DNA of 64,000 nt from Dimorphilus gyrociliatus (Eukaryota; Animalia; Annelida), in the NCBI GenBank assembly GCA_904063045.1, contig CAJFCJ010000011.1, positions 62,001-126,000 of the forward strand, given 5' to 3'. The notes under the pieces are model-generated. The model had not been told where the DNA came from. It did not search any database and saw only the letters and a list, made by a program, of their open reading frames with translations. A program made the translations under genes and the position numbers. Below, piece by piece: positions 28,031 to 30,593 of this stretch (position 1 is the stretch's first letter; each line of letters begins with the position of its first letter).

Positions 28031-30593
28031 ATGGCACTTTGTCAAAGATTTATCTCTATTAATCCAGATAGGGATATGAAATCCAAATTCCCAGTAGACA
28101 TTACCAACCACCAAGCGAAGAATTGGGAAGAGCTTAAACAAATGGTTTATGCTATTCTACACCAGAATGTAACTAACTTTTACATTCTGAAAGTAGACAG
28201 TAGCAAAAATCTCATATCGAAAAAAAATACCTACGCCCTCATTTTCGATAAACAAATATCAAAAGGTATTAGTATTGCTGAAAAGTTCACAAGTTATAAA
28301 TTTTCATACATTTTCTTTAGATAACGTAGAAACAATTTTAAGAAACAAGTGTACAAGTGAGTTTGAAATGAGACTAAGCGCTACAGATCTACAAGAGTTT
28401 GATGTATTGGACAAACCGGCAAAGTACGATATTAATAGAATAGAACTAAGGAAAATGAACAAACTAAATGTATTGGAAGAGATAAAGAACTTGTTTGGAG
28501 TTTATTGCGACATAGAATCAGATATATGCGTAAGAATAGTATTGGTGACTTTTTATTAAATATTTCTTATTAATACTTCTATTTAAAGATATTGAAAGGA
28601 GGTGCATTAGAAATTCGCAATGCGGTTGCATATCTAAAAGACGAATGTCCAGAATCCTTGCGAAATTATTTTAAAAGGGCTAAAAAAAGACCACTAACAA
28701 ATGATAGTGACAGCGATGACGACCAGTTTGATGAAAATGGGCATGCTTTAACTTTTCAAGATAGAAATACAAAAGTATTTTTATACGAAGGAGATTTAAC
28801 CAAAGTGAACACTGATTCTGTAGCTATTTCAGTCGGACCAAATTTTGAGCATTCCGTTGGTGTTGCTTCGGCTGTTATGAATTTGGCGGGTCCGGAAGCT
28901 CGCCAAGCCTGTATAAACAAGAAATCAATTAGACCTGGAGATGTTCATATGATTAGTGTGCAAACGACCATGCCTGTTAGTTATATATTAACAACCAATG
29001 CAACACTTGCTTTTTGTCACTACACATTCAGCTCACCAATCGACATTATAGAAAGCTGCTATAAAAATTGTATAACTGAAGCTGATAAAGGAAATTTAAA
29101 AAGTGTTGCCTTTCCTCTTTTCGGCTGTGGATTCAATAAATTACCTGTAGAAGAAGTTGTGAATGCTTTTCTCAATGGATTAAGAGACAGCAATAGTCGA
29201 TTAGAAGAAATTCATATTGTTGAGTTAGAAACTAGAATATTTAATAAATTAAAATCTTGCATCAAAATTAAATTGAAAGGAGATGTCAAACCATGCCAAC
29301 ACCCAAAGAAGCGAAAAGACTCTGCGGCAGTTGCAACTAATGATGTTGATATGGAACTACCAAACTATGTAATGAAAAATGGATTGAATGTAGTCTGTAG
29401 GACTGGAGAAATATTGAAAGAGAAGAGCACAGTATTAATTTTTCCGTTATTATATGGATACAACTCATATGAAGGATTTCCCTACGACTTAGTACGTTTC
29501 ATTGGAACATACAACTACTCTAAATATAAAAGAATATTGGAAAATATGACTCCATTTAGCTATGAGTTTGTCACGTTGTGTGATTCGCTAACGTTATGTC
29601 ATTTTTCGTATCCAAATTCTCCTAGCGAATTTATTGAAAACAAATTTGAAACAGCCTTGAATAATATTCTAACAGAGCTTGATTCGTTCAATAACGTTAC
29701 AAGCGTTTCACTGTACCCTTGGACAGGTAATTATTAGAAAACCTTTTTATTTTTATAGCTTACAAACCTTTTACTGCAGATAAATTCTATTCATTGGATA
29801 TGACAAACTCGATCATTAAAGTCTTCAACGATTTTCCGAAGCCAAAAAACATTAATATAGTAACAGTGTTACATGAACAGAGACATATTGTACAAACTTT
29901 TCATCAGGCTATAAAAAGGTTTAAGGAACCCCCTCAGAGTATGAATGAGAAATGCCCCATTTGTCTGGATAATATAGATATGATATATACTACTCTACCT
30001 TGCAGTCATACTTTCTGTAAAACTTGTTTGGATCAATGGCTAAAAGGAAAGGGAGTGTGTCCTGTTTGTAAAGCCTATGTTGCGAAAACTTTAGGAAACC
30101 AGCCTGAAGGTCAAATGGGCTTTTATAGGGACAGTACTTGCCTTCCTGGATTCGAAAACTGTGGTACAATAGTCATTCATTACTCATTTCCTAGTGGAAT
30201 TCAAGGCCCCCAACACCCTAATGCAGGTGTACCATATAGTGGCACGACAAGACAGGCCTACTTACCAGATAACGCAGATGGTAAAGAGGTATTAAACCTG
30301 CTAAAGAAAGCTTGGGATGAAAAATTGCTGTTTACAATTGGTCGTTCTGTAACCACTGGAATGGACAACTCTGTTATATGGAATGATGTTCATCACAAGA
30401 CTAGTCGCTCTGGTGGACCAACAGTGTAAGTCTCCCTTCCAATTTTCAGCAATAATTTAATAATATATACAGTATATTATATATATGCACTCTCTATATA
30501 TATATATATCTTTTTTTTTTCAGATACGGCTACCCAGATCCTACTTACCTGAATAGAGTAAAGGAAGAGCTGAGAGCGAAAGGAATATACTAA
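28031..30593 (+). CDS. Deltex-family E3 ligase with N-terminal KH-like region, two macrodomains, C3HC4 RING and Deltex C-terminal (DTC) domain (~765 aa)
   Basis: Exons 28031-28265, 28321-28529, 28589-29726, 29780-30425 and 30524-30593 join in frame (2298 nt). Macro 1: [16 protein letters not shown]...GVASAV..LAG...[10 protein letters not shown]. Macro 2 is degenerate (GEILKEK...SVSLYPWTG). RING: [22 protein letters not shown]: GNQPEGQM...RQAYLPDN...WNDVHHKT...[20 protein letters not shown]. Confidence 0.9.

Follow-up and report, generated by a model that had tools for sequence, protein, structure and literature searches.

A DTX3L-like RING-DTC ubiquitin ligase with macrodomains in the same predicted chain in the annelid Dimorphilus gyrociliatus

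Introduction

In tetrapods, the macrodomains of PARP9 are thought to bring ADP-ribosylated targets in trans to its ligase partner DTX3L; in the Deltex ligases DTX1, DTX2 and DTX4, WWE domains bind poly(ADP-ribose) (PAR). In DTX3L, H707 and E733 correspond to H582/E608, the catalytic pair of DTX2, and the pocket residue is Y719 (PMC11460948, PMC7615817). A recent preprint holds that DTX3L carried a macrodomain before PARP9 arose, and lost it when PARP9 emerged (10.64898/2026.04.23.720386). Here we describe a gene on the plus strand of a 64-kb stretch of the genome of Dimorphilus gyrociliatus (contig CAJFCJ010000011.1; hereafter the window, in which all coordinates are counted). The gene is predicted to join two macrodomains, a RING finger and a DTC domain in one chain. 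Its product is very probably an ordinary member of an ancient macro-bearing branch of the DTX3L-like Deltex E3 ligases.

Results

As read from the sequence, the gene occupies 28031-30593 and consists of five in-frame exons, which together make up 2298 nucleotides (nt), or 765 codons followed by a TAA stop (Table 1). The four introns (55, 59, 53 and 98 nt) are all GT..AG with donors starting GTA, and have a guanine-plus-cytosine (GC) content of 19-25%, against 32-44% in the exons. Retention of any one of them leads to a frameshift or an in-frame stop. A database search returned the public model of the same gene, a 745-residue 'E3 ubiquitin-protein ligase' (P0002 in our numbering; CAD5119710.1, UniProt A0A7I8VYW9, DgyrCDS8300), which shares all four introns and whose residues 1-78 are identical to the translation of exon 1. 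The public model differs from the 765-residue one solely by splicing out a further 60 nt (29566-29625, in-frame, GT..AG). The junction of 30425 to 30524 is supported by the DTC profile, which runs on across the last intron from exon 4 into exon 5. The predicted five-exon, 765-residue gene is thus taken to be real, as an earlier note, made from the DNA letters alone, had described it. It is also already public, with Macro, RING and DTC Pfam matches on record, and hence is not new. Elsewhere within the 64-kb window we found no second copy of any exon, and no further macro or DTC copy. In what follows, profile and sequence searches were run exon by exon, and full-length protein work was done on P0002.

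The C-terminal module is the best defined part of the protein. In P0002 the DTC profile PF18102 matches with an E-value of 1.1e-60 over profile positions 2-133, which makes a complete DTC at the C-terminus, and exon 4 matches a C3HC4 RING at E 2e-12, with the Cys/His spacing also readable in the sequence; both the RING and the complete DTC with its HHKT motif, spread over exons 4 and 5, are therefore as first described. The RING-DTC part matches the structures of DTX2, DTX3L and DTX1, and the DTC aligns with that of human DTX3L (3PG6) over 136 residues without a gap (E 1.2e-50). H707, Y719 and E733 of DTX3L are all kept, as H712, Y724 and E738 in P0002 and as H732, Y744 and E758 in the 765-residue model; the corresponding codons are 30391-30393 for the catalytic His, 30525-30527 for the pocket Tyr and 30567-30569 for the catalytic Glu. 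Judged by its C3HC4 RING, the missing 2-residue insertion in the DTC and the pocket Tyr, the module is of the DTX3/DTX3L type, and its set of catalytic residues is intact. The PARP catalytic-type domain PF00644 had no match in any exon or in P0002.

To place the protein in its family, we used exon 4 in an exhaustive phmmer search, which returned 9911 proteins at E<=1e-3, and counted architectures in the best 150 cluster representatives. Pfam Macro was found in 34 of these 150 closest RING-DTC representatives and KH_DTX3L (PF21718) in 48, while our own macro hidden Markov model (HMM) detected macros in 36, five of which have two or three, the last one adjoining the RING. The macro-bearing relatives span sponge, coral, brachiopod, mollusc, crinoid, tunicate and amphioxus, with proteins of Oscarella, Xenia, Lingula, Patella, Haliotis, Antedon, Ciona and Branchiostoma as named examples. 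In a cluster of 74 mostly molluscan proteins in the ESM Atlas, Macro is present in 100%, DTC in 99% and RING in 93%. The earlier note had proposed a survey across Metazoa; among the relatives found here, macro and RING-DTC occur together from sponges to amphioxus. The note had also guessed that such architectures may already sit in databases; the gene itself is public and the design occurs in many invertebrate entries. A word-index search with exon 3 gave no match, and with the public model returned only that model itself.

The macro label is clustered on a FastTree tree of the RING-DTC part: it takes 13 changes, compared with 32.2 for shuffled labels, and none of 500 shuffles was as low. The worm protein lies in an invertebrate grade rich in macros. 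Next to this grade is a group of 70 rows without macros, to which the named fish and frog DTX3L belong. In fish and amphioxus, the proteins nearest to the worm's RING-DTC bear the name DTX3L. Going by these predicted architectures, the macro-bearing form is a widespread invertebrate state of DTX3L-like ligases and not a special fusion.

The gene had at first been described as a natural PARP9+DTX3L-like fusion, which would make it derived and lineage-specific, with a PARP9-like gene of two macros joined to a DTX3L-like one. The order of two macros followed by RING-DTC does resemble the PARP9 macros placed before the C-terminus of DTX3L, and a tandem-macro structure of PARP14 is among the PDB sequence matches. 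However, the PARP domain is absent, and macro 1 is nearest to MacroD-type sequences, not to PARP9. Moreover, sponge, cnidarian, lophotrochozoan, echinoderm and invertebrate-chordate proteins share this architecture and cluster on the RING-DTC tree, and macro loss, not gain, is placed at the origin of PARP9 (preprint 10.64898/2026.04.23.720386). We consider such a fusion very unlikely, and the description of the gene as one does not stand.

Among the matches, several vertebrate 'DTX3L' entries (P0001, which is Anabarilius grahami ROL42413.1, P0003 and P0004) hold two or three complete RING-DTC modules per chain. They are probably tandem genes merged by annotation, which inflates their search scores.

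The nearest relative of the RING-DTC part, P0005, is carried by a 4.2-kb Logan contig from run ERR14224706 (L001). The exon layout of this locus is the same as that of the worm gene, and intron positions and phases match. An upstream open reading frame (ORF) of L001 is 41% identical (E 1e-49) to the part of the worm protein between macro 1 and the RING (region X), and a minus-strand gene downstream is homologous to the window ORF 31103-31993 (25% identity, E 3e-23). As both region X and the downstream gene are homologous, the L001 locus is predicted to be orthologous or anciently paralogous to the worm gene. The DTC tail of L001 (L001:1366-1425) has Asp at the catalytic Glu position (KDDL vs KEEL). 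The downstream gene, which lies tail-to-tail with the ligase gene in the window (31103-31993, minus strand, perhaps together with 30797-31006, minus strand), has no Pfam match and is conserved beside the DTX3L-like gene in L001.

Macro 1 is recognized by Pfam in exon 3 (PF01661, E 3.6e-14, residues 85-192 of the exon), with a profile score of 53.1 bits against a gathering cut-off of 22, and corresponds to residues 199-385 of P0002 by the envelope of the family HMM. Of solved structures it matches MACROD2 (E 1.8e-11), PARP14 macro1-2 (E 9.7e-9) and, weakly, PARP9 (E 0.016). In the alignment with MACROD2, macro 1 retains the adenine-contacting Asp. Other positions have changed (Asn to Gly, GGGG to HSVG, Asp to Ala and His to Met), so that the MacroD-type catalytic set is incomplete, and macro 1 also departs from the NAAN...GGVA and SSGIxG consensus of its relatives. 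The Asn of the MacroD type is gone, as are the Gly-rich loop and the Asp/His. Hydrolase activity of macro 1 is unlikely and its binding of ADP-ribose uncertain. The linker that follows contains PKKRK (29321-29335), a motif similar to classical basic nuclear localisation signals; apart from it, the linker is poorly conserved in the relative, at 15% identity.

Region X was harder to assign. Neither Pfam nor PDB sequence searches found a macro there, and a profile built from the second macros that lie beside the RING in five relatives had no match in it. Single-sequence hhalign gave alignments that looked collinear, with scores of 17.6 with the extra 60 nt spliced out and 23.6 with them retained, against a shuffle maximum of 20.9; we treated these as noise and dropped them as evidence. 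In contrast, a two-species profile of region X matched a 21-sequence macro profile with an hhalign score of 31.0 (pairwise E 1.1e-4) over 113 collinear columns, a score that none of 100 column shuffles reached (mean 11.6, standard deviation 2.0, maximum 17.5). The first 50 residues of exon 4 match the strand and helix that end the macro profile, and 1 of 100 shuffles reached that score. Consistent with this, residues ~400-560 of the ESM Atlas model of P0002 align to macrodomain clusters only, with template-modelling (TM) scores by query of 0.60-0.68 over 132-150 residues. These alignments extend to about residue 558, and exon 4 begins at residue 509. Together, the profile and the model support region X as a second, degenerate macro domain. 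It has GEI in place of GDI (GHF in the relative) and lacks both Gly-rich loops, and it probably does not bind ADP-ribose. A DTX3L-type KH-like domain before the RING was also considered for region X, and was rejected, as there was no PF21718 signal and the profile and the Atlas model indicate macro. The two macrodomains first noted have thus both been recovered, macro 1 by Pfam and macro 2 only via the two-species profile and the Atlas model; Pfam, PDB sequence searches and our own AlphaFold models did not recover the second.

The phase-1 intron 29727-29779 splits macro 2, and L001 has an intron at the same position and in the same phase. This bears on whether two neighbouring genes, one for the macros and one for the RING-DTC, could have been wrongly stitched together, in which case reading and writing of ADP-ribose would not be in one chain. 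A Met codon at 29800, in exon 4 and upstream of the RING, could suit a separate start. However, only 63 nt lie between the stop reached by reading through from exon 3 and that Met, the macro 2 fold carries on into exon 4, and the syntenic relative has its phase-1 intron in the same place. In addition, more than 30 relatives of other phyla, many of them RefSeq models, have Macro and RING-DTC in one predicted chain. Wrong stitching is, in our judgement, extremely unlikely.

The 60 nt that the public model removes (29566-29625) have an exon-like GC content of 38%, and the donor that their removal requires, GTTTGT, is weak. L001 retains their counterpart in frame. The encoded residues are 52% identical, and the identities by codon position (0.57/0.67/0.29) show the pattern of constrained coding; L001 has no GT at the donor position of the extra intron. 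The encoded residues align to two core strands of the macro 2 fold. The exon-like GC, the weak donor, the conserved coding in L001 and the core macro strands make the 765-residue model the better of the two. Most likely the stretch is coding, and the public model wrongly drops 20 conserved codons of macro 2. A minor isoform with the stretch spliced out may exist.

The first ~200 residues (exons 1-2 and the start of exon 3) form an orphan N-terminal region. It had no Pfam match at E<=10, and a jackhmmer search found no relative of it among 170 family members. Structural matches in the Atlas were weak (RRM-, KH-, NID- and ACT-like, TM 0.30-0.37). The profiles of KH_DTX3L (PF21718) and the DTX3L alpha/beta domain (PF21717) had no match at E<=10 in residues 1-215 or 385-562. 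The KH-like N-terminus proposed at first was thus not confirmed, though given the family a KH-like fold is plausible.

Several observations weigh against the protein being an ordinary macro-bearing family member. The tree is a FastTree one, with local support values only and a midpoint root. Macro 1 scores 53 bits, compared with about 90-185 bits for the macros of its relatives, and lacks, besides the conserved Asn residues, some of each phosphate loop. No binding motif is present in macro 2, where even the position equivalent to the Asp differs between the two relatives. Single-sequence AlphaFold models of region X have low confidence (predicted local distance difference test 46 spliced, 38 retained) and no PDB match at E<=0.001 by Foldseek; a weak enrichment of macrodomains among the Foldseek matches of the spliced model was not counted as evidence.

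A further explanation is that the macros are vestigial. The protein would then be a plain DTX3-like ligase, in which the DTC pocket is the sole contact for ADP-ribose or nucleic acid and the macros serve as scaffold or for oligomerisation. The absence from macro 1 of its conserved Asn, of the Gly-rich loop and of the second-loop Gly, and from macro 2 of all motifs, would fit this, as would the repeated loss of activity from the macrodomains of macroPARPs (PMC10221186). Macro 1, however, keeps the adenine-contacting Asp and an overall profile above the Pfam threshold, and comparison of the two relatives shows coding constraint on both macros. It is also established that non-catalytic macros often still bind ADP-ribose. 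We hold vestigial macros to be doubtful, if the most serious of the alternatives, and favour membership of the macro-bearing branch with macros that are worn in this species.

The positions of the gene's parts and of recognizable exons of its neighbours are collected in Table 1. There was no PARP or other ADP-ribose gene among the long ORFs of the window, and no head-to-head PARP9 neighbour. The longest ORF of the window (40353-41639, plus strand, 428 residues) has no Pfam match at E<=0.001 and overlaps with two ORFs on the minus strand.

Table 1. Positions in the window of the parts of the ligase gene and of neighbouring exons
Feature	Position	Strand	Description
Exon 1	28031-28265	+	ATG at 28031; 78 codons and 1 base; start of the orphan N-terminal region
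Exon 2	28321-28529	+	Remainder of the orphan N-terminal region
Exon 3	28589-29726	+	End of the N-terminal region, macro 1, basic linker, most of macro 2
Exon 4	29780-30425	+	Last strand and helix of macro 2, RING, most of DTC
Exon 5	30524-30593	+	DTC tail and TAA stop
Macro 1	28739-29299	+	Pfam core 28841-29164; exon 3
Macro 2, exon-3 part	29372-29726	+	Degenerate; two-species profile, Atlas matches
Macro 2, exon-4 part	29780-29925	+	Aligns to macro profile columns 153-174 of 175
C3HC4 RING finger	29950-30072	+	Residues 57-97 of exon 4; zf-RING_2 E 2.2e-12, zf-C3HC4_2 E 6.8e-12
DTC, exon-4 part	30094-30425	+	PF18102 E 2.4e-47, profile positions 2-110; HHKT motif
DTC, exon-5 part	30524-30593	+	PF18102 E 5.9e-8, profile positions 113-133
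EML-type beta-propeller exon	2723-3442	-	Window neighbour
PLAC8 exon	7317-7946	-	Window neighbour
Mitochondrial calcium uniporter (MCU) exon	16783-17235	+	Window neighbour
GMP synthase C-terminal domain exon	23123-24016	-	Window neighbour
tRNA-ligase anticodon-binding domain exon	38305-38694	+	Window neighbour
IRS-type PTB domain exon	52446-53036	-	Window neighbour
C2orf69 exon	57008-57529	-	Window neighbour

Discussion

By analogy with the known ligases, the RING of the worm protein would recruit E2~ubiquitin, and the DTC pocket, like those of DTX2 and DTX3L, would bind ADP-ribose or the 3' end of a nucleic acid and activate its hydroxyl so that ubiquitin can be transferred. ADP-ribosylated targets may be brought to the ligase in cis with the help of macro 1, and macro 2 would probably be a structural spacer. 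The earlier note had spoken of ADP-ribose reading hard-wired to ubiquitin writing. What remains of that idea is the presence of the macros and a catalytically intact RING-DTC in one predicted chain; the reader role is uncertain, as the binding motifs are eroded. Because both macros have worn binding loops, the reading function may have been weakened or lost in this fast-evolving worm. In macroPARPs, macrodomains have lost their activity repeatedly (PMC10221186).

An Aplysia DTX3L orthologue belongs to an antiviral-like co-expression module (PMC8195618), which hints weakly at an immune role in this clade.

More broadly, the vertebrate DTX3L-PARP9 module could have its ancestor in the self-contained, macro-bearing DTX3L-like proteins, of which the worm protein would be a pared-down example. 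In these, a single chain would find a mono-ADP-ribosylated target with its macro and ubiquitylate the same ADP-ribose with its DTC. The eroded loops of Dimorphilus would then reflect a new ligand or a purely structural role. We regard this as unlikely on present evidence, and put it forward as speculation; testing it would reveal what the PARP9 macros contribute to DTX3L. The gene alone matters little, since its domains are already public and its architecture is common in invertebrates and described in the 2026 preprint. Two results are of use nevertheless. The public gene model omits 20 conserved codons, which would form core strands of a hidden second macrodomain. The compact five-exon gene of 765 residues would also serve as a minimal example of the DTX3L state that preceded PARP9, suited to asking whether macros in cis direct the ubiquitylation of ADP-ribose.

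The worm protein shares with human DTX3L (BBAP, the E3 partner of PARP9) a C3HC4 RING followed directly by the DTC, and keeps all three of its key residues, H707, Y719 and E733. Human DTX3L, however, combines RRM, alpha/beta and KH-like domains, lacks a macrodomain and gains macros by binding PARP9, whereas in the worm protein two macros stand in cis and neither PF21718 nor PF21717 is detectable. With PARP9 and PARP14 it shares tandem macrodomains, the later ones of which are non-catalytic; unlike them, it lacks both a PARP catalytic and a WWE domain, and KH_PARP14 gave no match. DTX1, DTX2 and DTX4 resemble it in having a RING-DTC with the His-Glu pair and an ADP-ribose-type reader in cis, but their RING is of the H2 type, their DTC has the 2-residue insertion, their pocket residue is His and not Tyr, and their readers are WWE domains and not macros.

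The closest counterparts are the invertebrate proteins of Lingula (XP_013419977), Patella (XP_055955559), Xenia (XP_046839279), Oscarella (XP_065826699) and Branchiostoma (KAI8507650, 'dtx3l'), which like the worm protein have one or more macros, a RING and a DTC in one chain. The N-terminus of the worm protein is unrelated in sequence to those of the invertebrate macro-bearing relatives. The macros of these relatives show good conservation, with NAAN and GGV motifs and Pfam E-values of 1e-25 to 1e-55, whereas those of the worm are far more eroded. Some invertebrate macro-bearing DTX3L-like proteins likewise have a second, more divergent macro beside the RING, and the group lies in the same neighbourhood of the tree as the worm protein.

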